Assembly (NCBI RefSeq): GCF_000150275.1
Contig: NW_002060946.1
Coordinates: forward strand, 5,742,597 to 5,806,596
Reading direction: 5' to 3'
Length of the DNA: 64,000 nt
Origin: Trichoplax adhaerens
Lineage: Eukaryota > Animalia > Placozoa
A model generated the notes under the pieces. That model ran no database searches, was not told where the DNA came from, and worked only from the letters and a program-made list of their open reading frames with translations. Every line of letters starts with the position of its first letter. The first letter of the stretch is position 1. Shown here one piece after another: positions 4,216 through 57,597 of the stretch. The position numbers and the translations under genes were made by a program.

Positions 4216-4520
4216 TCGGATATCTTGTAAAATTTATTAGTTGATTTTTTAACCGTGTAGTAGGATTTATTCATGAGCATTTTTAGAGTTGTTGAGTTTA
4301 ATCGATAGCTAGGCGTAAGGGCGATATTTCTTTTCCTGAATAAGATATTCGAAATAATAGAGGTTTGCATTTAGTTTTCAGATATCTTGTAGGATTTATT
4401 GGTTGATTTTTCGAGCATGTGGCAGGATTTGTTCATAAATATTATTTAGTGTTGTTGAGTTTAACAGATAGCTAGTCGTAAGGCCGATGTTTTCGTTCCT
4501 GAAATAGGTATTCGCACTAA
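4216..4520. repeat. ~160-bp diverged tandem duplication covering the last codons, stop and 3' flank of GPCR1
   Basis: gatatcttgta...gttgttgagtttaa..gatagctag.cgtaagg.cgat occurs at ~4219-4356 and ~4381-4520. Confidence 0.85.
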
Positions 4521-5525
4521 TGGGCGTTTGCACATTTCAATAATTTCACTACGGATATCACGGCTAAGCCAGATATATAATAGAGGATTTAAAGCAGGAT
4601 ACGCAAAAGCTAATTCTCGTAGGCCATACTCGGATGCTCTTAAACAATTTACAATTAATCTGATGAACCGTAGTCTTAGCTTTAGTGGTGATGATCCCAA
4701 AATGAGGGCTATCATGGAACAAATGATGTACGGCAAAGTCAATAATATAAAAGTACCGGTGATAATAATTAATGGTACAGCGGCTTTAAATTGCTTGGTT
4801 ATAAGTTGACTTTTTCTTCGTTGAACAGGATCAAATGAAGGATACTGTTCGTTATTCATCTGTTTTAAATGGCGTAGAGCAATAATAAAGATATAACCAT
4901 GACAAATGAGCATGATCTTCAACGGACATAAATAGCAAAACGAATAAAAGAAAATGTTGTAAATTAATTCGTCGCCAGCGTCGCCACTGGTAGTGCAAGG
5001 ATTTTTATCATCTCTTTTAACAGTGCGAAATGTTAAAACAGGATAAAATGATCCAATTAGGGCCATCACCCACACTAGCGTTAGATAAATCCAAGTAGTC
5101 CGACGATTAACGAAGTTACTAAAATGAAAGGGCATGCCTACTGTGATTGCCCTATCGATCGCGATTAAAGCTAAATGCAAGCACATACACGACATTAGAA
5201 AATTACGTAAAGAAGTCTTGAGATAGCATAAAATATTTGTTGGATCCATTACGACAAGCGGATAAGGAAGGCAAAAGAGTATTGCAAATAAAATGCCACT
5301 CATTGACATACTGCATAATTTAACGTTTTGAATTTTCCATAACCTTTTCCGTGTTAATATTAGATAAACTAGGAAACCATTAGTTAATAGGGCTGTAAAA
5401 CCAATTATTTCATAGTAGATAATTTGAGGTAATTCTCTCATCACATTATCGCTGTTGGTCGTATTGCTAAGGCTAAGCAACGATCCAGTCGAACGATTGT
5501 CCACTTCAGAGTGATTCTCCATCAT
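4461..5525 (-). CDS. Intronless rhodopsin-like (class A) GPCR, orphan, 354 aa
   Basis: Seven hydrophobic segments; N-terminal N-glycosylation sequon (NTT); TM1 Asn (LLTNG); TM3 Cys (NILCY); DRY-like IDRA; TM4 Trp (LVWV); ECL2 Cys (KNPCT); TM6 FxLLxLP; TM7 NPLLY followed by helix 8. Confidence 0.92.
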   Translation of the reverse strand: MMENHSEVDNRSTGSLLSLSNTTNSDNVMRELPQIIYYEIIGFTALLTNGFLVYLILTRKRLWKIQNVKLCSMSMSGILFAILFCLPYPLVVMDPTNILCYLKTSLRNFLMSCMCLHLALIAIDRAITVGMPFHFSNFVNRRTTWIYLTLVWVMALIGSFYPVLTFRTVKRDDKNPCTTSGDAGDELIYNIFFYSFCYLCPLKIMLICHGYIFIIALRHLKQMNNEQYPSFDPVQRRKSQLITKQFKAAVPLIIITGTFILLTLPYIICSMIALILGSSPLKLRLRFIRLIVNCLRASEYGLRELAFAYPALNPLLYIWLSRDIRSEIIEMCKRPLVRIPISGTKTSALRLAIC

Positions 5526-6649: not shown

Positions 6650-9000
6650 GCAACATTATGCTACCAAACAGAAAGTATCCGTTATCTTGACGAATATCAT
6701 CGTTAATGAGATTTATTGCTGTATGATTTCTACTTCTTGAGCTATACATTTTTTTAAAATAAATATAGCTCATGGCTTACAAATCCATATCCTCCATCTA
6801 TTAAAATAAAGTACTCCAGTGCCACTTTTCCCTTTAATATTGATCATTTAATGTGTTGTCATTAATTCAAGTGCTTCATTCCATAATGATAGCCAACGCA
6901 ATGTATCCGTTGACTTAACTATTATCATCGTTGATACCATTTATTAATGTACGATTCTACATCTTGAGCTATAATCTTTATTTCAAAACAGATATAGTTT
7001 ATGGCTCTCAGTTGATTATTATACTAATCCAATCCATGTCGTCCATATACATAAATACAATTCACTGCTCATCTTCGCTTATTAATTATTGACTGCGGTA
7101 TTAACTTGACTAATATCATCGTTAATAAGATTTATTACTTTACGATTCTACTTCTCGAGCTATATAATCTTTATTTTAAAATCAAATATAGTTTATGGCT
7201 TTTTATACTAATCAAATCTATACGCCAAAAAATATAGTACTGTTTCACTATTCCCTTTAATAAATATTGATTTCGGTATTAACTCGACTAATATCATTGT
7301 TAATAAGATTTATTCCTGTATGATTCTACTTCTTGAGCTATAAATTTTATTTCAAAAGCCTAACAGAGTTTATGGCTTTTTATACTAATCAAATCCATAC
7401 ACCTAAAAATACAGTACAGTTTAACTTTTCCCTTTACTAAACATCGACTACGGTATTAGCTTGACCAATATCATCGTTAGTATGATTCTGCTTCTTGAAC
7501 TATAATCTTTATTTATAGTTAAAGAGTCAATATAGTTTATGGCTTTTAGCTGCTTTCTATACTATTCAAATTTATATCATCTATGGGCAAAAAAATATCG
7601 TGCAGTGCAAACTTTTTCCCTTATAAACTATTAGTAGACCCTTCGCTCGTTACACTGCGCGTAGTGTATTAACTTGACTACTATCATCATGAATAAGATT
7701 TATTTCTGTATTATTCTACTTTTTGAGCTATAATCTTTATTTTAAAAAAATATAGTTTCTGGCTTTTTATACTATTTAAATTCATATCGTCCATTGATAA
7801 ACGCAGTAAGTGCTGTCGTTCCATGATGCTACTAAACGGAATGCATGCGTTTTTAAGTTGAATATCATCGTTAATAAGATTTATTACTGTACTGTATAAT
7901 TCTAGTTGTTGCGCCACTAGCCTTATTTAAAAGAAATCGAGAATATTATTGCATTTCGCTGCTTTTTATGCTATTGAAGTCTATTTTCGAGTATAGGTAA
8001 AATGTACGACTCCTATAGTACAGTGCAACGTTTTTCTTTATTATAATTATTGGTTATTTAATACGTTGTGAACTTTATTTTAGAATACTGTAAGTCAGAA
8101 TATATGAGATACCGACTTCATTTACAAGAGTTTATGGCTTTTATAGTAGTTGCTTATCATGCAGTTCAAGTTGATATCATCCATCTACAAAATCCAGTAA
8201 AGTGCAACATTATCCTTAAACGGAATGGGATGCATCCGTTTTTAACTTGAACAATATCATCGTTAACAAGATTTATGAGTGTACTGTATGATTCTAGTTG
8301 TTGCGCCATGAACCTTATTTTTAGAAGAAATAAGAGTATATTATAGCATTTCGCTGCTTTTTATGCTGTTGAAGTCTATTTTCGTGCTTAGGCAAAATGT
8401 CTAGAATAGCGCAATGTTTTTCTTCATTACATCTATTGATCATTTAATTCGTTGTGAACTTCATTTTAGAATACCGTAAGTCAGGATACACAAGATATCG
8501 ACTTCATTTACAAGAGTTTATGGCTTGTACAGTAGTTGTTTCATCATGCTGTTCAAGTTGATATCATCCATCTACAAAATCCAGTAAGGTGCAATTTTAT
8601 CCTACGGAATGCATCCGTTTTTAACTTGAACAATATCATCGTTAACAAGATTTATGACTGTACTGTCTGATTCTAGTTGTTGCACCATTAACCTTATTTT
8701 TAGAAGAAATAAGAGTATATTATAGTATTTCGCAGCTTTTTTATGCTGTTGAAGTCTATTTTCGTACTTAGGCAAAATGTATAGTGTAACGTTTTTCTTT
8801 ATTACAACTATTGATCATTTAATGCGTTGTGAACTTCATTTTAGAATACCGTAAGTCAGGATACACGAGATATCGACTCCATTTACAAAAATTGATGGCT
8901 TTTACAGTAGTTGCTTTATCATGTTGTTTACGTTGATATCATCTATCTACAAAATTGAGTAAAAGTGCAATTTTATCCTTATTATTATCGATCGTTCAAT
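6650..9000. repeat. Degenerate tandem array, ~180-225 bp units grading into ~380-390 bp units
   Basis: Anchor aatatcatcgttaa..agattta recurs at ~6693, 6920, 7112, 7291, 7467, 7682, 7861, 8253, 8632. Confidence 0.85.
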
Positions 9001-9849
9001 CTGTGGCAAATCTTACCTGTTTCATAGGAAGTCAAGATATCCTAACTTGCTGAGCGCTAACTGGCAGTAACTTATTCTCTCTATATGGCAGATGTCTAAT
9101 CCAGGTATCTACTAAACTGCGGTGTGTAAATGTCTACTATTAACTACGAATGCATTTGCATTTTCTTGATGGTGTCTTGCGCACTTTCCTTCTTACAGTG
9201 AATCATCTAGACGTCCAATAAGGTACTATTAGCCTATTGAACGCCCTTATGTTATGTTATCATCAACACAGCAGCAATCCTCCCAACAAGGGGAATCTGG
9301 GAAATTAAAGTTGATTTTATTTCCTTACTGATTGAAAGAATTGGATGAAACAAAATTAAACAGGAAAATGTCGACGTACATTGAATGGTATAGGTACGAT
9401 TGCTATCAACAGAATAGCGTTTGCGGTTATTAAAATTGACAGTAATTGGATTGTACATGGGTTGGATGAATAACAATAAGATTGCAAACTTTGAATCATT
9501 TGCTCAACACATGCGATCTAAATCGTCCTTTAATGTGAGCAATTGATTTCCATCTAACCCAAGTCATACTGTATTACGAAGAATAAGTGGAAGCCAATAT
9601 CCGCCATTGACAGTGACGATAACTGGCATTTTTGCTACTTTTGCTACATTAATAATAAAAGTTTCAATTGGCTAGCGCTAGATTGCTTACTATAGGGTAT
9701 TGTTATATAAATTACTATGTTCCTTAATTGATTCTTTTGGATTTTCTATTAATTCGGTAATGGATTGCCTTACGAAATAGATACCATTTACAATACCATC
9801 AGACTAGCAAGAATTATATACCATATGATTGTAGCTGTATAATAAGCGT

Positions 9850-12058
9850 TTAGGACATTGGAAATTGGTAAAGAGCTGCATACCTTCCAGTTTGGAAATG
9901 ATACAACTGTCTCTCAATATCACCTAACAAAGAACTTGCTCCAATACGGAATAGATTGGGTTGTGTCCATTCGTCTCCTAGCTCTTCCTTCATCAGAGCA
10001 AGCCAACTTAAGCAATCTTTAGCGCTTCTAATCCCTCCGGCTGGCTTAAATCCGACCTTGTATCCAGTACGTTGGTAAAAATCACGTATTGCCCTGATCA
10101 TGACAAGAGCAACTGGGAATGTGGCATTCACTGCTTCTTTGCCTGTCGATGTTTTAATAAAAGTTGAGCCAGCCATCATACTGACAAGGCTTGCTTTATA
10201 CACATTGGTCAACGTTCCTAAGTGTCCCGTAGCAATAATCGTTTTTAACAGGGCATTACCACACGCTTTTTTGCAGGCAGCTACTTCATCATATAAAGCT
10301 TGCCAATTGCCTGATAATACATAGCATCGAGTGATGACAATATCGATTTCACTTGCACCAGCTTCGACTGCGTATTTGATTTCATCTAGGCGTTGAGGAA
10401 GAGGTGTTTGACCATCAGGAAATCCAGCTGCTACAGAAGCAATGGGCACTTGTGAGTGATTATTCTTATTAGCGGTAACAGCATCCTTGACTCGAGACGA
10501 GTAGACACATACCGCTCCGGTAGTAATTTCTGAAAAGTAGAACATAGTTTTGAGTTTCATTAATTCATTTTGATCAACACAAGTTATATGCTAATGATCA
10601 AATATGCATGATAAACATTCATGATGAAATTGGCAGCATGTTGATGTAAAAAATGCAATTCTTCAAGTCGCTATGATAGCAAAATTTCTTAGTTACAACA
10701 CAATTCGTCAAATGATAGCCAGCATTAACAAACAACCAATTACAGTGCCGAAGGGAATGAGTAGAAAGAGTCTAAAAATGCAAATCTTGAAATAATAAGA
10801 GTTAAGGCAAGCATTACCAAGTTGATTGAACCGAGTGGCACTTTTCAAATGATTGTAAAACAATAAAACTACTGAAGGAGATGCTGTAAGTAGAATGAGT
10901 CTAAAAAAGTAATTGATGAAATGATGATAGTTCAGGCAAGGATTGCAAAGTTGAATCGATCGCCACTCTTCAATCATTTAACAGCAAAACAAACGAAGAA
11001 AATGAGTCGAGTGAGTTTCAAAATGCAATTCTTGAAACGATGCGAGTAAAGTAAAGAATGGCAAAGTTGAACCGATCGCTACTCTTCTTTCAACTACGCC
11101 ATAATAAGCTAGCGAAGAAAATGAGCGATTTTCAAAATTCACTGGTTGAAATGATGAGAGCAAGGCAAGCATTGCAAAGTTGGCAAGCTACCGAAGAAAA
11201 CGAGCGATTTTCAAAATGCAATAGCTAAAATGATGAGAGCAAGGCAAGCATTGCAAAGTGGGCAAACTACCGAAGAAAACGAGTGATTTTCAAAATGCAA
11301 TGGTTGAAATGATGAGAGCAAGGCTTGCATTGCAAAGTTGGCAAACTACCGAAGAAAACGAGCGATTTTCAAAATGCAATAGCTAAAATGATGAGAGCAA
11401 GGCAAGCATTGCAAAGTGGGCAAACTACCGAAGAAAACGAGCGATTTTCAAAATGCAATGGTTGAAATGATGAGAGCAAGGCTTGCATTGCAAAGTTGGC
11501 AAACTACCGAAGAAAATGAGCGATTTTCAAAATGCAATAGCTAAAATGATGAGAGCAAGGCAAGCATTGCAAAGTGGGCAAACCACCGAAGAAAACGAGC
11601 GATTTTCAAAATGCAATAGCTGAAATGATGAGAGCAAGGCAAAGTTCACTGGCATCCTATCAAGGACTGCAATGTTGAACCCATCGCCACTCTTCAACTG
11701 CGCGATGTTTGAAATGATGAAAATAAGGGAAGAATAACAGAGATTTCGAATCTATTTATCCGATAGAAATCTTACTCAAGTCTTTTAATTGGAGGCTTTC
11801 AAGAACGTCTTGACGGATAGGATTATTGGCCTTGAAACAGAGACGTGATACATTCGTTTCCGTATCATCACCAGACAAGGTGGTTAAATCTAAGCAAGTA
11901 ACAGCTCTTAAAAACCAAGCTGCTTGCCAATCTTTCTTGACAGATCGTCGCTTGAGATGGGTTGCTGCTCTCCTCTGCACTGCTGGTAAGTTAACACGCG
12001 ACGATTCAACCCATGCCAGATCCAGAGGTTGGATTACATTCCGTTGGCTGTCTACCAT
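9850..12058 (-). CDS. DERA: Deoxyribose-phosphate aldolase (DERA/DeoC), copy 1; 2 exons, 12058-11776 and 10529-9850, 320 aa; probably an allelic or assembly duplicate of copy 2
   Basis: Motifs DLTTLSGDDT, GAVCVY, AAGFPDGQ, GASEIDIVI, FIKTSTGK (Schiff-base Lys), FKPAGGIR, FRIGASSLL. Phase-1 GT-AG intron (donor gtaaga, acceptor ttttcag) gives 283+680=963 nt. Confidence 0.85.
11114..11645. repeat. 79-bp minisatellite (~7 units, alternating A/B variants) in the DERA copy 1 intron
   Basis: gaagaaaa(c/t)gag anchors at 11114, 11193, 11272, 11351, 11430, 11509, 11588. Confidence 0.95.
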
Positions 12059-12194
12059 CGTTCAATTTGGTTATTGTAGCTAGAAATTCATTCAAATCCA
12101 ATCGATCAAGATTGCCTAAAGCAAGGAATAGCAGCAATGGCGGACAGCAAATGGGCTCCAACGGGTTCCAGTACGGTACCAGTGGACTGAAGAG

Positions 12195-12244
12195 NNNNNN
12201 NNNNNNNNNNNNNNNNNNNNNNNNNNNNNNNNNNNNNNNNNNNN
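12195..12244. other. Assembly gap (50 N)
   Basis: Run of N. Confidence 1.
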
Positions 12245-14011
12245 AGATACTGTAAGTCAGAATATATGAGATACCGACTTCATTTACAAGAGTTTATGGC
12301 TTTTATAGTAGTTGCTTATCATGCAGTTCAAGTTGATATCATCCATCTACAAAATCCAGTAAAGTGCAACATTATCCTTAAACGGAATGGGATGCATCCG
12401 TTTTTAACTTGAACAATATCATCGTTAACAAGATTTATGAGTGTACTGTATGATTCTAGTTGTTGCGCCATGAACCTTATTTTTAGAAGAAATAAGAGTA
12501 TATTATAGCATTTCGCTGCTTTTTATGCTGTTGAAGTCTATTTTCGTGCTTAGGCAAAATGTCTAGAATAGCGCAATGTTTTTCTTCATTACATCTATTG
12601 ATCATTTAATTCGTTGTGAACTTCATTTTAGAATACCGTAAGTCAAGATACACAAGATATCGACTTCATTTACAAGAGTTTATGGCTTGTACAGTAGTTG
12701 TTTCATCATGCTGTTCAAGTTGATATCATCCACCTACAAAATCCAATAAGGTGCAATTTTATCCTACGGAATGCATCCGTTTTTAACTTGAACAATATCA
12801 TCGTTAACAAGATTTATGACTGTACTGTATGATTCTAGTTGTTGCGCCATTAACCTTATTTTTAGAAGAAATAAGAGTATATTATAGCATTTCGCAGCTT
12901 TTTTATGCTGTTGAAGTCTATTTTCGTACTTAGGCAAAATGTATAGTGTAACGTTTTTCTTTATTACAACTATTGATCATTTAATGCGTTGTGAACTTCA
13001 TTTTAGAATACCGTAAGTCAGGATACACGAGATATCGACTCCATTTACAAAAATTGATGGCTTTTACAGTAGTTGCTTTATCATGTTGTTTACGTTGATA
13101 TCATCTATCTACAAAATTGAGTAAAAGTGCAATTTTATCCTTATTATTATCGATCGTTCAATCTGTGGCAAATCTTACCTGTTTCATAGGAAGTCAAGAT
13201 ATCCTAACTTGCTGAGCGCTAACTGGCAGTAACTTATTCTCTCTATATGGCAGATGTCTAATCCAGGTATCTACTAAACTGCGGTGTGTAAATGTCTACT
13301 ATTAACTACGAATGCATTTGCATTTTCTTGATGGTGTCTTGCGCACTTTCCTTCTTACAGTGAATCATCTAGACGTCCAATAAGGTACTATTAGCCTATT
13401 GAACGCCCTTATGTTATGTTATCATCAACACAGCAGCAATCCTCCCAACAAGGGGAATCTGGGAAATTAAAGTTGATTTTATTTCCTTACTGATTGAAAG
13501 AATTGGATGAAACAAAATTAAACAGGAAAATGTCGACGTACATTGAATGGTATAGGTACGATTGCTATCAACAGAATAGCGTTTGCGGTTATTAAAATTG
13601 ACAGTAATTGGATTGTACATGGGTTGGATGAATAACAATAAGATTGCAAACTTTGAATCATTTGCTCAACACATGCGATCTAAATCGTCCTTTAATGTGA
13701 GCAATTGATTTCCTTTTAACCCAAGTCATACTGTATTACGAAGAATAAGTGGAAGCCAATATCCGCCATTGACAGTGACGATAACTGGCATTTTTGCTAC
13801 TTTTGCTACATTAATAATAAAAGTTTCAATTGGCTAGCGCTAGATTGCTTACTATAGGGTATTGTTATATAAATTACTATGTTCCTTAATTGATTCTTTT
13901 GGATTTTCTATTAATTCGGTAATGGATTGCCTTACGAAATAGATACCATTTACAATACCATCAGACTAGCAAGAATTATATACCATATGATTGTAGCTGT
14001 ATAATAAGCGT

Positions 14012-16334
14012 TTAGGACATTGGAAATTGGTAAAGAGCTGCATACCTTCCAGTTTGGAAATGATACAACTGTCTCTCAATATCACCTAACAAAGAACTTG
14101 CTCCAATACGGAATAGATTGGGTTGTGTCCATTCGTCTCCTAGCTCTTCCTTCATCAGAGCAAGCCAACTTAAGCAATCTTTAGCGCTTCTAATCCCTCC
14201 GGCTGGCTTAAATCCGACCTTGTATCCAGTACGTTGGTAAAAATCACGTATTGCCCTGATCATGACAAGAGCAACTGGGAATGTGGCATTCACTGCTTCT
14301 TTGCCTGTCGATGTTTTAATAAAAGTTGAGCCAGCCATCATACTGACAAGGCTTGCTTTATACACATTGGTCAACGTTCCTAAGTGTCCCGTAGCAATAA
14401 TCGTTTTTAACAGGGCATTACCACACGCTTTTTTGCAGGCAGCTACTTCATCATATAAAGCTTGCCAATTGCCTGATAATACATAGGATCGAGTGATGAC
14501 AATATCGATTTCACTTGCACCAGCTTCGACTGCGTATTTGATTTCATCTAGGCGTTGAGGAAGAGGTGTTTGACCATCAGGAAATCCAGCTGCTACAGAA
14601 GCAATGGGCACTTGTGAGTGATTATTCTTATTAGCGGTAACAGCATCCTTGACTCGAGACGAGTAGACACATACCGCTCCGGTAGTAATTTCTGAAAAGT
14701 AGAACATAGTTTTGAGTTTCATTAATTTATTTTGATCAACACAAGTTATATGCTAATGATCAAATATGCATGATAAACATTCATGATGAAATTGGTAGCA
14801 TGTTGATGTAAAAAATGCAATTCTTCAAGTCGCTATGATAGCAAAATTTCTTAGTTACAACACAATTCGTCAAATGATAGCCAGCATTAACAAACAACCA
14901 ATTACAGTGCCGAAGGGAATGAGTAGAAAGAGTCTAAAAATGCAAATCTTGAAATAATAAGAGTTAAAGCAAGCATTACCAAGTTGATTGAACCGAGTGG
15001 CACTTTTCAAATGATTGTAAAACAATAAAACTACTGAAGGAGATGCTGTAAGTAGAATGAGTCTAAAAATGTAATTGATGAAATGATAATAGTTCAGGCA
15101 AGGATTGCAAAGTTGAATCGATCGCCACTCTTCAATCATTTAACAGCAAAACAAACGAAGAAAATGAGTCGAGTGAGTTTCAAAATGCAATTCTTGAAAC
15201 GATGCGAGTAAAGTAAAGAATGGCAAAGTTGAACCGATCGCTACTCTTCAACCACGTAACAACAAACTAGCGAAGAAAATGAATCAAGTGAGTTTCAAAA
15301 TTGCAATTTTTGAAACGATGAAAGTAAGGCAGAGCATTACAAAGTTAACCCCGATTGCCACTCTTCAACTACGCCATAATAAGCTAGCGAAGAAAATGAG
15401 CGATTTTCAAAATGCAATGGTTGAAATGATGAGAGCAAGGCAAGCATTGCAAAGTTGGCAAACTACCGAAGAAAACGAGCGATTTTCAAAATGCAATAGC
15501 TAAAATGATGAGAGCAAGGCAAGCATTGCAAAGTGGGCAAACTACCGAAGAAAACGAGCGATTTTCAAAATGCAATGGTTGAAATGATGAGAGCAAGGCT
15601 TGCATTGCAAAGTTGGCAAACTACCGAAGAAAACGAGCGATTTTCAAAATGCAATAGCTAAAATGATGAGAGCAAGGCAAGCATTGCAAAGTGGGCAAAC
15701 TACCGAAGAAAACGAGCGATTTTCAAAATGCAATGGTTGAAATGATGAGAGCAAGGCTTGCATTGCAAAGTTGGCAAACTACCGAAGAAAATGAGCGATT
15801 TTCAAAATGCAATAGCTAAAATGATGAGAGCAAGGCAAGCATTGCAAAGTGGGCAAACCACCGAAGAAAACGAGCGATTTTCAAAATGCAATAGCTGAAA
15901 TGATGAGAGCAAGGCAAAGTTCACTGGCATCCTATCAAGGACTGCAATGTTGAACCCATCGCCACTCTTCAACTGCGCGATGTTTGAAATGATGAAAATA
16001 AGGGAAGAATAACAGAGATTTCGAATCTATTTATCCGATAGACAATCTTACTCAAGTCTTTTAATTGGAGGCTTTCAAGAACGTCTTGACGGATAGGATT
16101 ATTGGCCTTGAAACAGAGACGTGATACATTCGTTTCCGTATCATCACCAGACAAGGTGGTTAAATCTAAGCAAGTAACAGCTCTTAAAAACCAAGCTGCT
16201 TGCCAATCTTTCTTGACAGATCGTCGCTTGAGATGGGTTGCTGCTCTCCTCTGCACTGCTGGTAAGTTAACACGCGACGATTCAACCCATGCCAGATCCA
16301 GAGGTTGGATTACATTCCGTTGGCTGTCTACCAT
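14012..16334 (-). CDS. DERA: Deoxyribose-phosphate aldolase (DERA/DeoC), copy 2; 2 exons, 16334-16052 and 14691-14012, 320 aa
   Basis: Same motifs as copy 1. The spliced junction reads LKDL-K-ITTGAVCVY. Animal-type N-terminus (LDLAWV...RRSVKKDWQAAW) and C-terminus (TGRYAA...PMS). This copy has intact upstream sequence. Confidence 0.95.
15389..15920. repeat. 79-bp minisatellite (~7 units) in the DERA copy 2 intron
   Basis: Anchors at 15389, 15468, 15547, 15626, 15705, 15784, 15863. Confidence 0.95.
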
Positions 16335-18046
16335 CGTTCAATTTGGTTATTGTAGCTAGAAATTCATTCAAATCCAATCGATCAAGATTGCCTAAAGCAA
16401 GGAATAGCAGCAATGCCGGACAGCAAATGGGCTCCAACGGGTTCCAGTACGGTACCAGTTGGGACTGAAGAGTGACAAATGATGCAAAAGTGACGCAAAC
16501 CCGACACTCGTGGCTATACACGCTTCATACGCCTACTGTGTCACTGTCGCTTTAGGCTTGACGTGGTGCAATGGTGGGTAGGTCAGTGAAAGGAGAGCGT
16601 ACCGCGCCGGCGCAGTATCGATGGCATGACGGCCAATGGGCCACGACGATCCTCGCGTGTTGCTTCTTTTACTGCGACATCAATTTTGCTCGGTGTAGAA
16701 CTTCATGGCTCGCATTCACCGTATCGTGTTCTTTACTGTACTGTAGAAGGAAATACAACATGGCGATTGAAGTATCGATGGATAGATGACATGATGGTCA
16801 ATGGACAACGACGATCATCGCGTCTTGCTTCCTTTATTGCGACATCGATTTTGCTCGTATCGCTTGCAGTCACCGTATCGTGTTCTTGCTGTACTGTAGA
16901 AGGGAATACAACATGGCGATTTAAGCGTGATATTGGACGTACACTACATCAGTTCAGTTTTGCACTTCTGCAGGTGTCTCCCATTTCTTACTGAATTCAA
17001 CAACAAAATGGCAGACATCGAGTACAAGACTGAACTGATTGAGTAGTCCAGTTTGGTGTACAGTGTAGACTGTACATGATGATATCGTTGTCCGTTGACT
17101 CAAAAGCACTTTCCATCCACCAGCATGTTGCAACAAGGGCGTCGGAGCCATGCAAAATTCATGTCACCAGCGCATCTGCCAACACCACCAACACGCCCAC
17201 GTGTCGTACCGTATCGAATACGGTACGACTGATAGGCAGATTGCACATACAGTACTGCACGCACGGTACTGTACACGGAGTACAGAGATCAACTACACGC
17301 ACACTACGTACGAAATCATGTGTTCACCGATAAACAGCATGCAAGCCAATAGAAACAGGCGGACGACTGAAGCGTGCGTCCACGTGGAAAAATACAAATA
17401 ATAACCAGGTGGTCAAGATGGTCAGCGATAACCGACACCTTGTTGTGCTTAGTAATAATAAATAAAAAAACAGTTTATTTCCCATCAATTTTCCATCGGC
17501 AAGGCGAATACGCAATGCAATAGTGACCACTATGATTGATTAAGTGGACAGTCGATGAGAAAATAGTAAGCAAGAATCAATCGTCTGCTAGTCATCACGT
17601 ACAGACACAGACTTGTGGTGTTTCCTCCGTCACGTCAACATGACAATAGAGGATATTATAGGCCACGGGCGATGCTTTCCGTATCATTACAACGCTCATG
17701 CTGAGTTGGGGTAATCACCCGACATAAACCAACAGTCTACAGTATAGAAAATACTTTGCCCATGGGCTGTAGCCATGGCCCACCACCAGTCAAGGTCACG
17801 GCGGGACGTAGTAGGGCTCTACCACTGCGCATGTCTAGTGGTGTGGCCACCACAGTTCTTATTGTGTACATAGGCTCGACTCCGTCAGCAGCTTGATGCG
17901 GATCCTTCAGACGTACAGACGTCGGACTTCCAGCCTGCAACGTTGGAGGTAGAATCGCTTTGGCAAGCTTGCCATACTTCCATCGAAGTCTCCAGGTTGC
18001 AACTGGATCATCGCTCTATTTCTCTTTAATTCATTATCATTGCAGT
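16335..18046. promoter_or_regulatory. Putative shared bidirectional promoter and 5' UTRs of DERA and ALDH16
   Basis: Visibly GC- and CpG-richer than the surrounding DNA and located between divergent start codons. Contains YY1-like AAnATGGC (16757, 16910, 17005), TGACGTGG (16559), CACGTG E-boxes (~17198, 17381) and CCAAT boxes (~16633, ~17346). Confidence 0.65.
16615..16924. repeat. Diverged ~155-bp direct repeat, 2 copies, in the DERA/ALDH16 intergenic region
   Basis: Units start gtatcgatgg at 16615 and 16772; both end with ctgtactgtagaagg.aatacaacatggcgat. Confidence 0.9.
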
Positions 18047-21000
18047 ATGGCTTCTACGGCAGCTTCCGTTGTTCAAACGGTAACTTCTAAAACCGAGGAG
18101 AATAATACAACCAAAGAATCACTCAAGCCAAGTAAACCGACTGTTAGTCAAATCTTCAAGACGTTAGAGTATGGCCCTGCTCCAGAATCGCCCGATGTAG
18201 CCTACGCTTGGTTAGATGATCATCACAGATCTTTTGGTCATTTTATTGATGGAAAATGGCTTAATCCCGAAGATCGGAAACGTTACGATTCACGATGCCC
18301 TGCTACAGGTGATATTATCCAGCTTAATATTAACCATCAAACGATGACATTTTCAACTGGATACCCCATTATTAGTTGGAGTCTATCATAACATGTACTG
18401 CTGTAGGAATGGCACAAAAGGGTTCGGCTTGCCAAGGGATTTAGTCCATGGCGATATGCAGATATCCTGATGCTATCTTGACATGACACTGTACCTAAAT
18501 ATCCAAACATGACATCGCCACAGTGCTATACAAACACCATGAGGTAAATCATGCATGATACAGTTATGAATCACAACGGTAAGAGAAATTCTTATAGCTA
18601 CTTGAGGCAATAATTTGCTACGAGCAAGCCGTGATCAAATTTCATCCAAGAAGCTCCAGTAGACGCAAGCAATCCATCATACAGTGGCAACCGATGACTC
18701 GACTGATTTCTCTCTAAACTAAAACGTACAGTGTACATTGAACCAAATTGCGAAATAGACGTTTCTACTGCATAGATAATTCAAGATGCCTACATTGTCC
18801 TACACTATCGTCACTATACGAATAGACATTGTATCTCATAATTATACTAATCGTGCCGTAGTAGACACTCTACTACAGGACGAAAAAGAAATAGTTGGCA
18901 ACAATCTCTTGACTAGATTCAGGTCTTTCATCAAAGAAAGGAAAGGAAAAGTTACTTTGCACGCACAATCCATCGCATAGGATAGACTGCATACATACAC
19001 TCTTATAGAAGAAATGTATCAAACTGTAGAAAGCGATTAAATTTATAAAGGCCGTCAAATCAATCGACTGCTTTGCTTGAATTTAATTTTATTCAGTAGT
19101 CCCTGGCTATACTAGTCGATGAGTAGAGCTACCCATAGAGTTAAGTAAGTTTCTTAACTCTATGGATTAACCCTATGAATGCAGCATTTACACATCGATA
19201 GTACAGTACTGTTGCATCAATGGATGTCTACTTGAGAAACAAGCCTCGGGTGTACAGTATATGTACAGTAAACTACAGATCAATCTGTAGTTTAGTATCC
19301 AGACAACTCAGCTATTAGCAAACTTTCAATAAGTATATGTGGTCCTAGATCAATTTTTTTTTTTCGGCAATTTCCATTAATTGATACCAATAGAACTATG
19401 TGACCTTAGAGGAAGCTATTATAATGAGTAAAAGTTGAAAAGTACTACAAATACGATGCAATCTTGGTTGATCATTTCTAGATCTGTCAATGTACAAATA
19501 ATAGTCACTCGACGTTACTAATTCATGGTCAACTTACCATAATAGTTGTCATTCCATTCATTATTATCCACACTATCTTCGTTTTAATGACTGTATTCAA
19601 CGAGCGCTAAATTGATTGTATTTTAGAATTAATATAATTATGTATGTTAACTTGAAATAGGAGAAAAGTTGGCATCAACTGTGCAAGGTAACCAAGAAGA
19701 TGTTGAAGTAGCTGTTTCTGCTGCTCGAAAAGCGTTCGTGAAATGGAGTGCTTTACCTGCACACGTCCGGGCGCGCCATTTATACTCGGTTGCAAGGCAT
19801 GTTCAAAAGCATATGAGATTGTTCGCCGTTATTGAGAGTCTCGATAACGGTAAACCGATCAGAGAGACTCGCGATTGCGATATACCAATCGTAATTCGCC
19901 ATATTTACCATCATGCTGGTTGGGCACAATTAGCAGATACCGAAATGAGAGGATGGAAACCTGTCGGCGTTGTTGGAGCTATCACGCCATGGAATTTTCC
20001 TTTAATGTTGTTGATCTGGAAGGTATGCAATAGTGGATTGGACCAATATACTTTCAAGTCAATGTCAACATATTTAAATTGAAGATTTGCTTTAATCTAC
20101 AATTCTTCACGTATCCATAGGTTTGTCCGGCGCTAGCTATGGGAAATACTGTGGTTTTAAAACCTGCTACCTATACTCGATTATCTGCCCTTTTATTAGC
20201 TGAAGTATGTGCTGAAGCCGGGCTACCACCAGGGGTATTTAACGTAGTAACTGGTAATGGTGCATTTGGCCACAATCTTGCAACCCATCCAGATGTAGAT
20301 AAAGTTGGCTTTACTGGTTCTACAGAAGTTAGTAGATATCTTCTCGTCACAATTATCGATGAAATGATTCTCTATAAAATGAATTTTTACTTTCCACATG
20401 ATCACCCATTCTATTAGCAAGAGATACTTGAAAGTGATTGCTTACTAATTGGATTAGGTAGGGAGAATTTTACGTCAAGCAACTGCTGGAAGTGGCAAGA
20501 AGATATCGTTAGAATTAGGAGGAAAATCCCCATTCGTTGTTTTCGATTCGGCAGACCTTGATAGCGCTGTAGAAGGCGTTGTAGATGCGATATACTTTAA
20601 TCAAGGCCAAGTTAGTTCTATAAATGTCCAGAAATGATAGGCATTATCCATTGTGCAATATATTAAGCTAGAACGGTTGCTGTTATTGGTAGCTCTTGTT
20701 GTATTAAACGAAATTTCGAAATGAGTACTGATTAATTATTTTTGGTAGGTTTGTAGTGCAGGATCCAGATTAATTGTACAAGAGTCTTGTGCCGAACTTC
20801 TGATAAAGAAGATCAAGGAAAGAATGACCCACTTACGTCTGGGTGATTCATTAGACAAGGCTATCGATATGGGGGCCATTGTGGATCCATCGCAGAGAAA
20901 AAGTGTTGACATGATGGTGCAAGAAGCCAAGGCGGATGGAGCTCATGTAAACTAGTGCATGTATTTTGATATAGTATTATACATTAGAGTACTATACTTT

Positions 21001-23299
21001 CGCACACCTAGTCTTAGAAAGTGTTTTAACTGAATAGGTTTATCAAGCCTGTGCATGTATGCCTTCAACCGGGTGCTATTATCCTCCTACTCTTATAACC
21101 AATGTACAAACAGTTTCAAAAATTGTCCAAGAAGAAGTAAGCATTGAATTTTTTACCAAATATGATCCTTTGTCAGTGGAAGCACTTACGCTATTCATAA
21201 TGAATCCTCTGTTATAGGTTTTTGGCCCTGTACTTGTTGTCCTTACCTTTAGAACTCCAAAGGAGGCTATCGCATTATCAAACAATACTGTATTCGGCTT
21301 AGGCGCAAGTGTTTGGACGGAAAACTTGTCTTTAGCTTTAGAAGTAGCATTAAGTATCCGAGCTGGAAGCGTGTGGGTCAATGGTCACAATTTATTTGAT
21401 GCCGCGGCTGGATTTGGTGGTATGCGTGAAAGTGGTTTTGGTAGAGATGGAGGCAAAGAGGTTATTGCTAACTTTCATTATTCAATTTAGCATATTTCGT
21501 ACCCTCGTTATTACTTCACCTCTACTGTACTCGCACTTTATTCAATGTCATTTTCAGTGCAATAGAAAGTAGGCCAATATGCATGATGTGGTATTTAGTA
21601 GAATTTTGATCGATTAGCATGTTTCCAGATCAATTGGATCACCATTTCTGAAGAACAATATCCTTCAACCAAACAAACTGAATTCATTTTCGCTTTTAAA
21701 TTAATTAAGCATTGTCCACTTGTATCTTGCTAGGGTCTTTACGAATATTCCGTGCCAGCATGGCTGACAAGGCCTCGTCCTGTGGCATTAAAAGATTTCG
21801 ATGCAAAAGCTTTTGGTAAAAATGTTGCTCCAAGACCTCTAAATCCTAGCAATAGCGAAAGCCATGTTTACAATAACACAACCAAATTGAATGGGCAGGA
21901 TGTACCCAGGTTATTTATCGCGGTGTTCTCTTTGTCAACCAGTGTTGCAATAGCCTCTTATTTATGTTATGGCAAACAGAAACTGTACGCAGAATTGATT
22001 TCATATTACTTCCATCTTTCTCAAAAATATTTAGCATTGACCGAACTTGCAAAATGTACATCGGAGGTGCTCAAAAGCGACCTGATGCTCCATACGCTCG
22101 AGCAGTGGTAAACCCTGATAACAAAACAATTGGTCAAGTTGGCGAAGGAAGTCGTAAAGATATCCGTGATGCTGTTGAAGCGGCTCATAAGGCTTTCCCT
22201 GGGTATAAACTATTTTACTACTAATAAACAATTGTAATATTAGATTACAATAATTGCAATACTTAAGTAAATAGCTTTCCAAGTTTCAATTTCTCTCTCA
22301 ATTAATACACCGCTGTATCTATTTCAGATGGGGAAAACGAGCTGCTCATAATCGTGCCCAAATTGTATACTTTGTTGCTGAAAATCTGGAATTGCGACGT
22401 GAAGAAGTTGCTTCACGCATGTCAGAAATGACGGGAAAGAGTTTAGAAGATTCAAAGTTAGAAGTGGATTTGTCCATTCAACGATTATTCTACTGGGGAG
22501 CATATGCTGATAAATATGGTGGAACTGTGCAGGTAAAAATTTTAGATATTATTTTTACTTTATCTTTCTGCTAGGTTGTCAATTTATTTCTTGATTTTGT
22601 TTCCTGAAATATATTTTCATTAAATGCAATTTGATAATCATAACTATTAGGAAACCAATCTCTATGGAGCAACTGTTAAGGTACATGAACCCGTTGGTGT
22701 TATTGGTATTGCTTGTCCCGATAATTGGCCTCTTCTTGGATTTGTATCATTATTTGCACCGGCAGTTATTCGCGGTAACACCATAGTCATAGTTCCAAGT
22801 GAAAAATATCCATTGAGTGCAGTAGATTTGTATCAGGTAAAGAAAAGATTTGCTCAATTCTTCTGATCTGTAATTAAATTCGTGCAATGTAAAAGTACGT
22901 ATGTGCTTCATTTTTGGTACAATTCACCTGTCATTGAATGTATGATATAATTTTATACGTTGTAAAGTCTTATTTCATTCCTGATCTGGGTCATACTAGG
23001 TTTTTGATACATCTGACTTGCCTGGTGGCGTTGTTAACATTGTCACTGGCAGCCGAGATCATTTAACCAAGTACTTGGTAGATCATCAAGATGTAGAAGC
23101 ATTTTGGTATTTTGGATCAAATGAAGGAAGCAGATATGTCGAGCACGCTTCTGCTGTGAATATTAAACGTACTTGGGTAAATTACGGCTTTGAGCGGGAT
23201 TGGGCAGACCCAGCACAAGGACAAGGAGAAGAATTTTTATATCACGCTGTTGAATGTAAAAATATTTGGATGCCCATGGGCGAAATTTTTGCTAACTAG
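18047..23299 (+). CDS. ALDH16A1: ALDH16-family aldehyde dehydrogenase (full ALDH plus extra C-terminal Rossmann-like domain), 12 exons, 852 aa, catalytic Cys retained
   Basis: Exons 18047-18308, 19661-20022, 20121-20327, 20458-20610, 20749-20946, 21038-21136, 21218-21460, 21734-21909, 22035-22202, 22328-22532, 22651-22836, 23000-23299. All introns are GT-AG and phase-compatible, totalling 2559 nt. Motifs: [60 protein letters not shown]; second half [31 protein letters not shown], ending KNIWMPMGE. Confidence 0.93.
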
Positions 23300-32324: not shown

Positions 32325-33371
32325 CTATATTAAATGAGTACTTGTCATTCTAGTTGTACTTGCTGATTGTAATAAAGGTTTCTTTCGTGAAATTCGTAAA
32401 AACTCTGCTATTTCTTTTCGTAGATCTTGACTAAAAAGGATAAATATAAATGGATTATAGGCGGGATAGGAGAAAGCAAGTTCACGCAAACCATACGATG
32501 AAGCTTTTAAAGCATTCATTAAAACTCCTAAATGTTTCTTCCGTATCTCCCATGGCAAGTCGCCTAATGAAAACGCAATGAATAAGCAGACGAAGTAGGG
32601 TACGGTAAATATCAGAAATACCACAGAGGTAACAATTAAAGGTCGTGCCGCCCTAAATTTTTTAATAATTCGTTGTCTTCCCCTTTTTAGTTCTTCCATG
32701 GATTTGCTTTGCTGATAATCAATATTTCTAACATGTCGCAATGCAACTACAAAAAGATAACCATGACATAGAATTATGACTGAATAGGGCAGAATAATGC
32801 ATAAGCTATAAAATACGTAATGATAATTAGCTTCTTCTGATATTGATCCCGTTAAATATGTAACATTGCTCTTTCGTCGTAAAGGACTGATGATTGGATA
32901 AAATGACACAAATAAGGAAATTAGCCAGACCAAGGTTAAATTAAGGCCTACAATACTTGGTCTAACGAAACTCTTGTACTGGAATGGAAAAGCGATAATA
33001 ACCACTTTATCCACTGCATCGGATGCTAAATGGAAACAGAATGAAGCCAGTAAGAAATTGCGCAATGGCTTTTGAATTATTTTTAGGACAGAGGTTGGTG
33101 GAGATGAAGAAATCCAAGGATAAGGTAGGCAGTAAAGCAATGCTAAAATGATGGAAGTAAAACACATACTACATAATCGGATGTGAGGAATTTTCCATAA
33201 TGTCCTTCGTGTTATAATAATGTAAGCTAGTGGAGCATTGATAGTTAATGCGATGATGCCAGTGATTCCATTATAAATGGCCGCAATAGTTATACTTAGC
33301 ATCACGCCATTGCCATTAGCATTTCTTGTTGTATTGATTGGCAATGAAGACAAAGTTGTGTTGATACTCAT
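32325..33371 (-). CDS. Intronless rhodopsin-like (class A) GPCR, orphan, 348 aa; paralog of the GPCR at 4461-5525
   Basis: 7TM pattern; two NTT sequons; blocks shared with GPCR1 (R.LWKI, LCSM, LxCLPYP, LRNFL, CHGY, YGLRELAFxYP); DRY site reads VDKV; TM7 NPFIF. Confidence 0.9.
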   Translation of the reverse strand: MSINTTLSSLPINTTRNANGNGVMLSITIAAIYNGITGIIALTINAPLAYIIITRRTLWKIPHIRLCSMCFTSIILALLYCLPYPWISSSPPTSVLKIIQKPLRNFLLASFCFHLASDAVDKVVIIAFPFQYKSFVRPSIVGLNLTLVWLISLFVSFYPIISPLRRKSNVTYLTGSISEEANYHYVFYSLCIILPYSVIILCHGYLFVVALRHVRNIDYQQSKSMEELKRGRQRIIKKFRAARPLIVTSVVFLIFTVPYFVCLFIAFSLGDLPWEIRKKHLGVLMNALKASSYGLRELAFSYPAYNPFIFILFSQDLRKEIAEFLRISRKKPLLQSASTTRMTSTHLI

Positions 33372-40546: not shown

Positions 40547-40596
40547 NNNNNNNNNNNNNNNNNNNNNNNNNNNNNNNNNNNNNNNNNNNNNNNNNN
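40547..40596. other. Assembly gap (50 N)
   Basis: Run of N. Confidence 1.
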
Positions 40597-42006: not shown

Positions 42007-42070
42007 NNNNNNNNNNNNNNNNNNNNNNNNNNNNNNNNNNNNNNNNNNNNNNNNNNNNNNNNNNNNNNNN
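42007..42070. other. Assembly gap (64 N)
   Basis: Run of N. Confidence 1.
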
Positions 42071-56892: not shown

Positions 56893-57597
56893 ATGTCTGA
56901 GGTCTCTAGTTTTGAGGACGAATTCGAAAATCAAGATCTCTTGAATTTATTGGATGATATTGCAAGTTGTGGCGACGAATTTGGCCGATTGGAAAGTCCA
57001 CTAACTCTAGACAGTCCTTTCTATGCCAGTCAACATCCACCATCACTGCAAAATTGGCTACCCTTAAATAAACCTCTTGATATCAAGTCGTTAAAGAAAA
57101 AAGTAGTCTCAACTACTTCTGCTATGAAAAGGAAACGATATGACAAAGATAGCGAAACAAGACAAGATAGGAATCATAGCAAGAAGAAGAAGAAAAATGC
57201 AATCTCAACTGTACGCCGAACAAGAGCTAACGAACGAGAGCGCAATCGAATGCATAACTTGAACGATGCATATGAAGAACTGCGTAAAGTTGTCCCCCAC
57301 TATCCTGCGGATAGAAAATTATCCAAGATTGAAACATTAATATTAGCACAAAATTATATTTTATCTCTATCCGATTTATTATTACAGCGCACATCAGCCG
57401 ATTATCAACAAAAAATTAATAAAGAATTTTGCTCACAACCTTATTCGCCATCATCAACACCTATCGCGACTACGACTAGCAATAGTCGTGACAGTGATGA
57501 CGATTCCTCATTAAGCTCACCGTTAGATTTTAATGATGACCCCGTATCTCCATTTGATAATGGTATAGACATGGAAATGAACGTTGTTGCTTTTTAA
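56893..57597 (+). CDS. Atonal-superfamily bHLH transcription factor (neurogenin/NeuroD/Mist1-like), single exon, 234 aa
   Basis: bHLH domain [56 protein letters not shown], preceded by a basic NLS-like stretch (KRKR...KKKKK); acidic and Ser/Pro-rich termini. Confidence 0.93.

Follow-up and report, generated by a model that had tools for sequence, protein, structure and literature searches.

Why do a deoxyribose-phosphate aldolase (DERA) and a member of aldehyde dehydrogenase family 16 (ALDH16) face each other in an animal genome, and do the two work together? The question arises from a 64,000-nucleotide stretch of the Trichoplax adhaerens genome (NW_002060946.1, positions 5,742,597 to 5,806,596; hereafter the window), in which an earlier note had read the genes as a functionally coupled pair and a possible relic of a bacterial operon. 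ALDH16 (CDD cd07111; PMC12041015) ranks among the least understood aldehyde dehydrogenase families, without a physiological substrate or partner (PMC12041015, PMC8160307), and one of these two reviews links its human member to gout. Our literature search, whose scope stopped short of the text of the Loktanella structure paper, found nothing connecting ALDH16 with DERA; the seven publications naming DERA and ALDH16A1 together were, by their titles, proteomic or expression lists. We consider it probable that a long-type DERA plus ALDH16, an ancient two-enzyme module, is present in the window in its animal form; ALDH16 would oxidise acetaldehyde, and the adjacency of the two genes here would be secondary. 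This reading would give ALDH16 a concrete, testable role as the partner of one particular DERA subtype.

Both genes were found where the earlier note had placed them, DERA on the minus strand from an ATG at 16334 and ALDH16 on the plus strand from an ATG at 18047. The DERA gene that faces ALDH16 (copy B, of two in the window) is composed as follows.

16053 to 16334 (inner end approximate), minus strand: exon 1, ATG at 16334, 72% identical to Nematostella DERA residues 7-94
14698 to 16052, minus strand: intron, boundaries from tblastn and a reading of donor and acceptor sites
14012 to 14697 (inner end at ~14697), minus strand: exon 2, stop at 14012, 78% identical to Nematostella DERA residues 95-321

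This copy is intact, and its two exons are together collinear with residues 7-321 of Nematostella DERA. By itself, exon 2 matches Pfam DeoC (PF01791, 8.9e-20) and passes the NCBIfam deoC equivalog model TIGR00126 (138.3 bits against a cut-off of 117.3), and its translation contains lysine-bearing stretches, as distinct from numbered residues, that are conserved with Nematostella and bacterial DERAs. Exon 1 encodes the N-terminal extension by which long DERAs are typified, and over 71 residues it shares 58% identity with the DERA of the Aureimonas operon. Tandem Repeats Finder reported two arrays within the intron, one with a 79-bp unit (15384-15917, 6.8 copies) and one with a 116-bp unit (15058-15457).

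The ALDH16 gene runs on the plus strand from the ATG at 18047 to a stop at 23299, in about 12 exons encoding two domains, and is collinear with Nematostella ALDH16 residues 2-847.

18047 to 18310 (3' end approximate), plus strand: exon 1, aligning from Nematostella ALDH16 residue 2
19660 to 20949, plus strand: exons 2-5 (~19660-20030, 20121-20345, 20458-20590, 20740-20949), NAD-binding and catalytic core
21038 to 21460 (approximate), plus strand: exons 6-7, end of the catalytic ALDH domain, Pfam Aldedh positions 407-455, Nematostella residues 393-505
21734 to 23299, plus strand: exons 8-12 (~21734-21913, 22033-22206, 22329-22532, 22651-22839, 22994-23299), the additional ALDH-like domain at the C-terminus by which ALDH16 is defined

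Pfam Aldedh (PF00171) was matched twice along the gene, once in the catalytic half, where exons 2-5 (60-76% identical to Nematostella) scored 1.1e-27, 2.1e-24 and 1.2e-06, and again in the C-terminal half, where exons 8-12 (Nematostella residues 506-847) covered profile positions 10-46 and 182-237. This C-terminal part of the gene is single copy in the Trichoplax genome, and its last exon retrieves two-domain ALDH16 proteins of ~800 aa. Among solved structures the best relative is Loktanella ALDH16 (6MVR, 7e-45; the next ALDH, 4e-20), the named matches are ALDH16A1 proteins, and the Trichoplax protein falls in the eukaryote ALDH16 clade with a support of 99. Trichoplax DERA and ALDH16 are intact, spliced orthologues of the DERA and ALDH16 of other animals. 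Exons 2-5 contain the catalytic Asn (PWNFP), Glu (ELGGKS) and Cys (VCSAGSR), and by this sequence criterion the protein would be an enzyme rather than a pseudoenzyme.

Between the two start codons lies a single further feature.

16335 to 18046, no strand, 1,712 bp: divergent DERA/ALDH16 intergenic interval, putative bidirectional promoter

A bacterial-style operon is ruled out for the Trichoplax pair by the opposite strands with facing 5' ends, the ATG-to-ATG spacing of 1,712 bp and the introns in each gene. The interval is GC-rich, as previously described (45-49% G+C versus 31-38% in the flanks), occurs once in the genome and contains a degenerate direct repeat of ~160 bp (16617-16925). Searches of the interval against Rfam returned no family, and its 122-aa open reading frame had no Pfam match. 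From the layout itself we infer one promoter region that would drive both DERA and ALDH16 in Trichoplax, and hence their co-regulation. Bidirectional promoters are classically limited to ≤1 kb, and the distance between the two ATGs exceeds this limit, which counts against our main reading, as does the fact that one animal lineage alone shows the linkage. An interval of 1.7 kb could also contain two separate promoters, and the pair was picked after a scan of many windows. Together with the single linked lineage, these points are consistent with chance neighbours that are regulated independently, for whose locus the bacterial link would be uninformative. We nevertheless regard such a coincidence as very unlikely: among the ~11,500 genes that the placozoan genome paper reportedly gives, the chance of two named genes being immediate neighbours is ~1.7e-4, and bacterial operons and fusions independently single out DERA and ALDH16.

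The bacterial evidence went far beyond the earlier statement that deoC often neighbours ALDH16-like genes. In our sample of 401 Pseudomonadota genomes, ALDH16 was present in 36, and exactly these 36, with no other, encoded a long eukaryote-like DERA (55-68% identical to Trichoplax DERA), a one-to-one co-occurrence with a Fisher p of 4e-52. A further 58 genomes carried only an E. coli-type DeoC (34-45% identical to Trichoplax DERA), and ALDH16 was found in 0 of these 58. The module was likewise detected in 78 of 301 sampled Actinomycetota genomes. DERA lay directly upstream of ALDH16 on the same strand in all 35 testable Pseudomonadota loci and upstream on the same strand in 41 of 41 tested Actinomycetota loci (with an insert of 2-2.6 kb in three), although these locus counts are not independent events because the sampled bacterial genomes overlap in ancestry. 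Across Aureimonas and Streptomyces, deoC abutted ALDH16 in 46 of 47 loci, the remaining one being cut at a contig end. In Actinobacteria ALDH16 is split in two and forms, with DERA, three translationally coupled genes. The Parasedimentitalea pair, its genes separated by 13 nt, is isolated between znuABC and rsmB. Natural fusions of DeoC with ALDH16 number at least six (P0150, P0159, P0160, P0161, P0164 and P0186), and they show only that proximity of the two enzymes is tolerated or favoured. Since co-occurrence is one-to-one among the 401 genomes, adjacency holds at every testable locus in two phyla and fusions arise in several lineages, these results suggest a role for ALDH16 in processing the aldehyde of the DERA reaction. 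Flanking deo or nucleoside genes were absent from the bacterial modules, whose neighbours are housekeeping genes, and this counts against the main reading.

In the bacterial modules of Parasedimentitalea marina (CP033219), Aureimonas frigidaquae and Streptomyces spp., both genes are orthologous to the Trichoplax pair; a fused form is represented by P0160, from a Rhodospirillales metagenome-assembled genome. The Trichoplax DERA exon reaches its 55-68% identity with the proteobacterial module DERAs, and an ALDH16 exon ~58%. DERA is placed 5' of ALDH16 in both settings, and in both the pair stands alone among unrelated genes. The bacterial genes, however, are co-directional and abutting or overlapping, sometimes fused or split into three, whereas those of Trichoplax are divergent, 1.7 kb apart and intron-bearing.

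It is important to consider that the DERA of this module is of a particular kind. The long, ALDH16-coupled subtype is defined in this analysis as a clade apart from E. coli-type DeoC that has an N-terminal extension of ~50-65 residues; accordingly, the TIGR00126 match begins at residues 51-66 in module DERAs. Trichoplax DERA falls inside the clade of ALDH16-linked DERAs (99) and inside its eukaryote subclade (99), and vertebrate DERA also belongs to the long clade, which a long branch separates from E. coli DeoC. Animal DERA belongs with the ALDH16-coupled DERAs and not with those of the E. coli type. The E. coli deoCABD operon likewise groups a deoxyribose-phosphate aldolase with other catabolic genes, but its DeoC is of another subtype: identity is 34-45%, the N-terminus is ~60 residues shorter, and there is no ALDH16 partner. 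The DERA and ALDH16 trees, whose congruence the earlier note had proposed to examine, agree at a coarse level, each with a single eukaryote clade within a proteobacterial-type group.

As far as sequences can tell, ALDH16 is most likely the dedicated aldehyde (acetaldehyde) dehydrogenase of DERA. In this scheme DERA would cleave 2-deoxyribose-5-phosphate to glyceraldehyde-3-phosphate and acetaldehyde, and ALDH16, with its Asn, Glu and Cys kept, would oxidise acetaldehyde to acetate with NAD(P)+. Such oxidation could pull the reversible aldolase reaction forward and stop a reactive aldehyde from escaping. For Loktanella ALDH16, a review describes activity towards hydrophobic aldehydes of medium chain length, hexanal among them (PMC12041015), and makes no mention of acetaldehyde, which counts against the main reading. 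The two enzymes may instead be coupled through another aldehyde (glyceraldehyde-3-phosphate, open-chain deoxyribose-5-phosphate or a longer aldehyde made or accepted by this DERA subtype), or ALDH16 may be mainly a structural or regulatory partner. We hold this alternative to be possible though doubtful. The reported Loktanella activity (PMC12041015) is in its favour, as are the separate clade and long branch of the long DERAs, the missing deo and nucleoside neighbours, and the several animal lineages that retain ALDH16 after losing its catalytic residues. On the other hand, the long DERA scores above the cut-off of the deoC equivalog model, and the full catalytic triad is present in most animal ALDH16 proteins, those of cnidarians and sponges included, in that of a choanoflagellate and in every bacterial ALDH16 aligned. 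The long DERA furthermore shares its clade with vertebrate DERA, and human DERA is an established deoxyribose-phosphate aldolase. We retain acetaldehyde oxidation as the preferred reading.

How the pair came to be adjacent in Trichoplax is a separate matter. The microsynteny survey suggested earlier had a divided outcome: linkage was pervasive in the bacteria tested, and it was absent from nine other holozoans (two sponges, a sponge-like contig, a cnidarian, a mollusc, a horseshoe crab, a brachiopod, a hemichordate and a choanoflagellate). In the cnidarian Nematostella, DERA and ALDH16 lie on different scaffolds. DERA has a navigator-like gene within 10 kb in Amphimedon as well as in Nematostella, and a SAPS gene is found beside it in Amphimedon and in a second sponge-like contig; in Trichoplax the navigator-like and SAPS genes are both on another scaffold (C1412, not C1411). 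Because the nine holozoans are unlinked and a navigator-like gene accompanies DERA in sponge and cnidarian, secondary re-clustering is a likelier origin of the placozoan adjacency than unbroken survival of the operon, and DERA would most likely have moved beside ALDH16 in the placozoan lineage. The Trichoplax pair would then be a rare animal case in which the two enzymes of one pathway were re-adjoined long after their operon had broken up. An unbroken relic would imply that the adjacency has been kept since the joint acquisition of a bacterial deoC-ALDH16 operon, with one inversion of DERA and independent losses of linkage in the other sampled holozoans. DERA does remain 5' of ALDH16, the order found at all bacterial loci, inverting DERA alone converts the operon order into the observed one, and the trees are congruent with one eukaryote clade in each. 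Such a relic is nonetheless unlikely given the nine unlinked holozoans, the separate Nematostella scaffolds and the navigator-like gene near DERA in Amphimedon and Nematostella. That gene suggests that the ancestral neighbourhood in animals was a different one, and in Trichoplax it is on another scaffold. The functional coupling that the earlier note proposed is strengthened by bacterial co-occurrence, adjacency and fusions and by the catalytic Asn, Glu and Cys kept in Trichoplax, and its bacterial neighbourhood stands, whereas the ancient operon relic loses ground to co-directional bacterial genes, unlinked holozoans and other neighbours elsewhere.

Known systems place these observations in context. 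Loktanella sp. ALDH16 (PDB 6MVR-6MVU; Liu and Tanner 2019, as cited in PMC12041015 and PMC8160307) resembles the Trichoplax protein in its two-part build, a catalytic ALDH domain followed by an additional Rossmann-like domain at the C-terminus, and in possessing the catalytic Asn, Glu and Cys; the two reviews give no physiological role or partner for it and leave DERA unmentioned. The pairs DmpG/DmpF and BphI/BphJ of aromatic degradation, in which an acetaldehyde-releasing aldolase and its dedicated aldehyde dehydrogenase are encoded by adjacent genes, are a model for the channelling idea. Their aldolases are metal-dependent class II enzymes, whereas Trichoplax DERA is a class I DeoC-family aldolase; their dehydrogenases are CoA-acylating and of a different fold family, whereas ALDH16 is a member of the ALDH superfamily (PF00171) with a hydrolytic Glu. 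On these two grounds the Trichoplax pair does not share the enzyme classes of the DmpFG/BphIJ type. A physical complex is proven for DmpFG/BphIJ; for DERA and ALDH16 it is hypothetical.

Human DERA and ALDH16A1, the latter a gout-associated pseudoenzyme, are orthologues of the Trichoplax pair and lie on different chromosomes. Mammalian ALDH16A1 shares the eukaryote clade with Trichoplax ALDH16 but has lost the catalytic residues. More speculatively, and with a rather low probability, DERA and ALDH16 could form an ancient obligate machine, inherited as a unit by holozoans from a proteobacterial-type donor, whose parts bind each other and channel acetaldehyde, which re-clustered under one promoter region in placozoans and in which the dead mammalian ALDH16A1 persists as a DERA partner. 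If true, the gout association of ALDH16A1 would be tied to deoxynucleoside breakdown, not aldehyde oxidation.

The surroundings of the pair differ from those first described. A second DERA, 99% identical and 4.16 kb from copy B, had escaped the earlier note.

9850 to 12058, minus strand: DERA copy A, intact, with one amino-acid difference in exon 2
8239 to 12194, no strand: duplicated block A, partner at 12401-16472 (blastn of the window against itself, 98.6% and 93.6% identical)
12195 to 12244, no strand: assembly gap of 50 N, cutting copy A 136 bp upstream of its ATG

Exon 1 of copy A shares 99% identity with copy B, as does the sequence upstream of it, and the 4.16-kb duplication stops at the gap; copy A may be an assembly artefact or a true duplicate, a caveat to the main reading. 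The immediate neighbour on the DERA side is consequently another DERA rather than the GPCR previously named as the flank. Nor does a bHLH gene flank ALDH16, the nearest (56893-57597) being 34 kb past it, with a second 7tm_1 GPCR (32325-33371) in between.

The head-to-head arrangement of DERA and ALDH16 described in the earlier note was confirmed in gene identities, coordinates and collinearity with Nematostella. The assembly carrying the window (contig C1411) comprises 105.6 Mb in 1,414 contigs, and exons were kept separate throughout, every search being run with single exons. The genes considered here are the following:

4461-5525, minus strand: rhodopsin-type GPCR gene, single exon (7tm_1, 4.8e-25)
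9850-12058, minus strand: DERA copy A, intact, with one amino-acid difference in exon 2
About 14697 to stop 14012, minus strand: DERA copy B, exon 2 (Pfam DeoC, 8.9e-20)
ATG 16334 to about 16053, minus strand: DERA copy B, exon 1, collinear with Nematostella DERA
ATG 18047 to end 23299, plus strand: ALDH16, about 12 exons, collinear with Nematostella ALDH16 residues 2-847
32325-33371, minus strand: rhodopsin-type GPCR gene, single exon (7tm_1, 2.7e-11)
56893-57597: bHLH gene

The two DERA exons match Nematostella DERA residues 7-321 in order at 72-78% identity, and exon 2 alone clears the NCBIfam deoC equivalog model (138.3 versus 117.3 bits). For ALDH16, identity to the Nematostella protein is 60-78% in most exons and 40-45% in exons 1 and 8. 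The Pfam ALDH profile is passed through twice along the Trichoplax gene, which indicates the two-domain build of ALDH16, and the gene retains the motifs with the catalytic Asn, Glu and Cys. Its nearest solved structure is the Loktanella ALDH16 (6MVR, 7e-45), other ALDHs scoring 4e-20 or weaker. The 1,712 bp from ATG to ATG have a G+C content of 45-49%, against 31-38% in the surroundings, and the interval occurs once in the Trichoplax genome. A transposon, an RNA gene or a hidden gene within it was considered and rejected, as the sequence is genome-unique, gave no Rfam match and holds a 122-aa ORF without a Pfam match.

The bacterial neighborhood of deoC and ALDH16, brought up in the earlier note, proved to be real. 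Searching species-representative bacterial genomes with the main ALDH16 exon returned 49 loci, 47 of them ALDH16 loci (1 Aureimonas and 46 Streptomyces); the Arenicella and Planctomycetaceae loci were discarded because they carry ordinary ALDHs. In 46/47 loci, the end of a DERA homologue lies about 180 nt ahead of the ALDH match, the 47th being cut off there; thus, DERA abuts the start of ALDH16 on the same strand. Among 401 genomes sampled evenly across Pseudomonadota, identities to the DERA exon of Trichoplax fall into two sharply separated groups, 36 genomes at 55-68% (E ≤ 1e-74) and 58 at 34-45% (E ≥ 1e-41). The 36 high-identity genomes are exactly the 36 that carry ALDH16, an association (Fisher p = 4e-52) inflated by shared ancestry, since these bacterial samples are phylogenetically non-independent. 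DERA lies directly upstream of ALDH16 on the same strand in all 35 Pseudomonadota loci with upstream DNA available; in the 36th genome, ALDH16 begins at the edge of its contig and the DERA of the long subtype is found on a different one. The module was also found in 78/301 Actinomycetota genomes, and all 41 loci tested there agree: 21 have DERA and ALDH contiguous within one read-through match, and the other 20 loci examined all place DERA ahead of ALDH16 in the same orientation, 3 of them with a 2-2.6 kb insert between the genes. In Parasedimentitalea marina, 13 nt separate the two genes, which have a zinc transporter operon on one side and rsmB on the other; no other nucleoside-catabolism gene was found near the pair, and the module is therefore self-contained, as in Trichoplax.

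Gene fusion and fission involve the same parts. A search with the ALDH16-specific last exon uncovered a metagenomic protein of 1,142 aa in which DeoC precedes both ALDH16 domains in a single open frame, and five more full-length fusions belong to separate clusters (P0159, P0160, P0161, P0164 and P0186); P0160 comes from a Rhodospirillales MAG, and P0164 and P0186 are more distant. Conversely, actinobacteria encode the catalytic part of ALDH16 (about 480 aa) and its C-terminal domain (about 280 aa) in separate genes, which overlap by 4 nt downstream of deoC; the three genes follow one another with overlapping stop and start codons (e.g., L128, 1156-4370, minus strand; other actinobacterial loci, L097-L129). 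The occurrence of the same three parts as one, two or three polypeptides is classic evidence that they work together. An apparent animal fusion from Artemia franciscana (P0185, NCBI nr CAG4635559.1), with DeoC and ALDH domains, was rejected because the DERA tree pairs it with a proteobacterial sequence as its sister; contamination from bacteria or a chimeric transcript is its probable source, not a crustacean gene. The metagenomic proteins P0193-P0201 join long-type DeoC to different partners, including a phosphopentomutase-like metalloenzyme domain, phosphoglucomutase-type domains and an MFS transporter.

Quick maximum-likelihood searches placed all ALDH16-linked DERAs in one starred clade, separated by a long branch from E. 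coli-type DeoC. Actinobacterial sequences are basal within it. The proteobacterial sequences and the fusions fall together in a starred group (98) with the eukaryotes, which are themselves monophyletic (99) and include the Trichoplax exon. The ALDH16 tree, with a Trichoplax row that covers only 15% of its alignment columns, resembles the DERA tree in coarse outline. This agreement indicates that DERA and ALDH16 share a history and that a proteobacterial-type module was the source of both genes in eukaryotes. An exclusively alphaproteobacterial donor was discarded: the module is about as frequent in a sample of that class (15/201 genomes) as phylum-wide (36/401), and thus the donor class cannot be named. 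Sponges, cnidarians and a choanoflagellate have ALDH16 as well. Taken together, the bacterial adjacency, co-occurrence, fusions and shared history strongly support, on comparative genomic grounds, the functional coupling of DERA and ALDH16 that had been proposed.

It had also been suggested that the Trichoplax pair could be a relic of a bacterial operon. The shared history and the bacterial adjacency of the two genes would fit such descent, but the holozoan genomes surveyed speak against an unbroken linkage. Called genes and tblastn were used to look for the partner gene within 10 kb on each side of DERA (Nematostella, Amphimedon, Sycon, a sponge-like contig, Lingula and Ptychodera) or ALDH16 (Lymnaea, Limulus and Salpingoeca), and it was absent there in all nine holozoans, although flanks of this size can miss neighbors in large animal genomes. 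Nematostella carries DERA and ALDH16 on separate scaffolds. Furthermore, DERA has other neighbors elsewhere: it has a navigator-like AAA gene no more than 10 kb away in Amphimedon (L056) and Nematostella (L055), and a SAPS gene stands head to head with it in Amphimedon and adjoins it in a second sponge-like contig (L058/L059). Matches 80% identical to Trichoplax DERA on megabase contigs had at first seemed bacterial; for the one inspected (P0216, L058 and L059), the sponge-like neighbors, SAPS fragments as in Amphimedon, led us to take it as animal DNA in a metagenome. The association of navigator-like and SAPS genes with DERA may represent an old animal microsynteny, yet the only matches to these families in the Trichoplax genome are on another scaffold, C1412, and not on C1411. 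An unbroken operon relic is consequently improbable. The simplest reading of these gene neighborhoods is that, in the lineage of placozoans, DERA departed from its older animal surroundings and came to lie next to ALDH16. Since the computed chance of these two particular genes being accidental neighbors is about 1.7e-4, we favor the inference that joint control of DERA and ALDH16 was selected in Trichoplax.

The cleavage of deoxyribose-5-phosphate by DERA is reversible and yields acetaldehyde together with glyceraldehyde-3-phosphate. If a dedicated NAD(P)+-dependent dehydrogenase oxidized the acetaldehyde, the reaction would become effectively irreversible and a reactive product would be removed. 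The pairing logic is that of the aldolase-dehydrogenase pairs DmpFG and BphIJ, although the protein families are unrelated. Two observations argue against a simple acetaldehyde story, however: the bacterial modules lie outside deo operons, and PMC12041015 reports Loktanella ALDH16 as active on medium-chain aldehydes such as hexanal. According to the reviews PMC12041015 and PMC8160307, ALDH16 has no known physiological role. Our literature search, which did not extend to the ALDH16 structure paper, found no link of ALDH16 to DERA or deoC; the few papers naming both are, judged by title, proteomic or expression lists. The catalytic triad is kept in most animal ALDH16 proteins and lost in mammals, chelicerates and Lymnaea, which leaves room for a possible non-catalytic partner role there. 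The notion of Trichoplax as the sole animal with an active ALDH16 came from a first alignment biased by divergent cluster representatives and was abandoned with the broader set.

The earlier note had overlooked that DERA occurs twice in the window. A 4.16-kb block at 8239-12194 duplicates 12401-16472 at 98.6% and 93.6% identity, the lower value being due to an intronic 79-bp tandem array. Copies A and B are 99% identical in exon 1 and for 136 bp upstream of it, the point at which copy A is cut off by a gap of 50 N (12195-12244). The duplicate is either a very young tandem copy or the product of two unmerged haplotypes placed side by side by the assembler. ALDH16 is single copy, and only copy B demonstrably faces it.

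The 79-bp array is found at 11109-11642 and 15384-15917 (6.8 copies, about 91% matches) and a 116-bp array at 15058-15457, both in the DERA intron; their open frames account for the repeated short ORFs in the ORF list. A 375-bp tandem repeat (8018-8979, 2.5 copies, 87% matches) lies immediately downstream of copy A, and related sequence reappears at 12401-13141. Regarding the flanking genes, the two GPCR genes bracket the DERA/ALDH16 region, and the bHLH gene that had been given as a flank is 34 kb away. Beyond ALDH16 come about 9 kb of AT-rich sequence devoid of long ORFs, and further N gaps in the window occupy 40547-40596 (50 bases) and 42007-42070 (64 bases).
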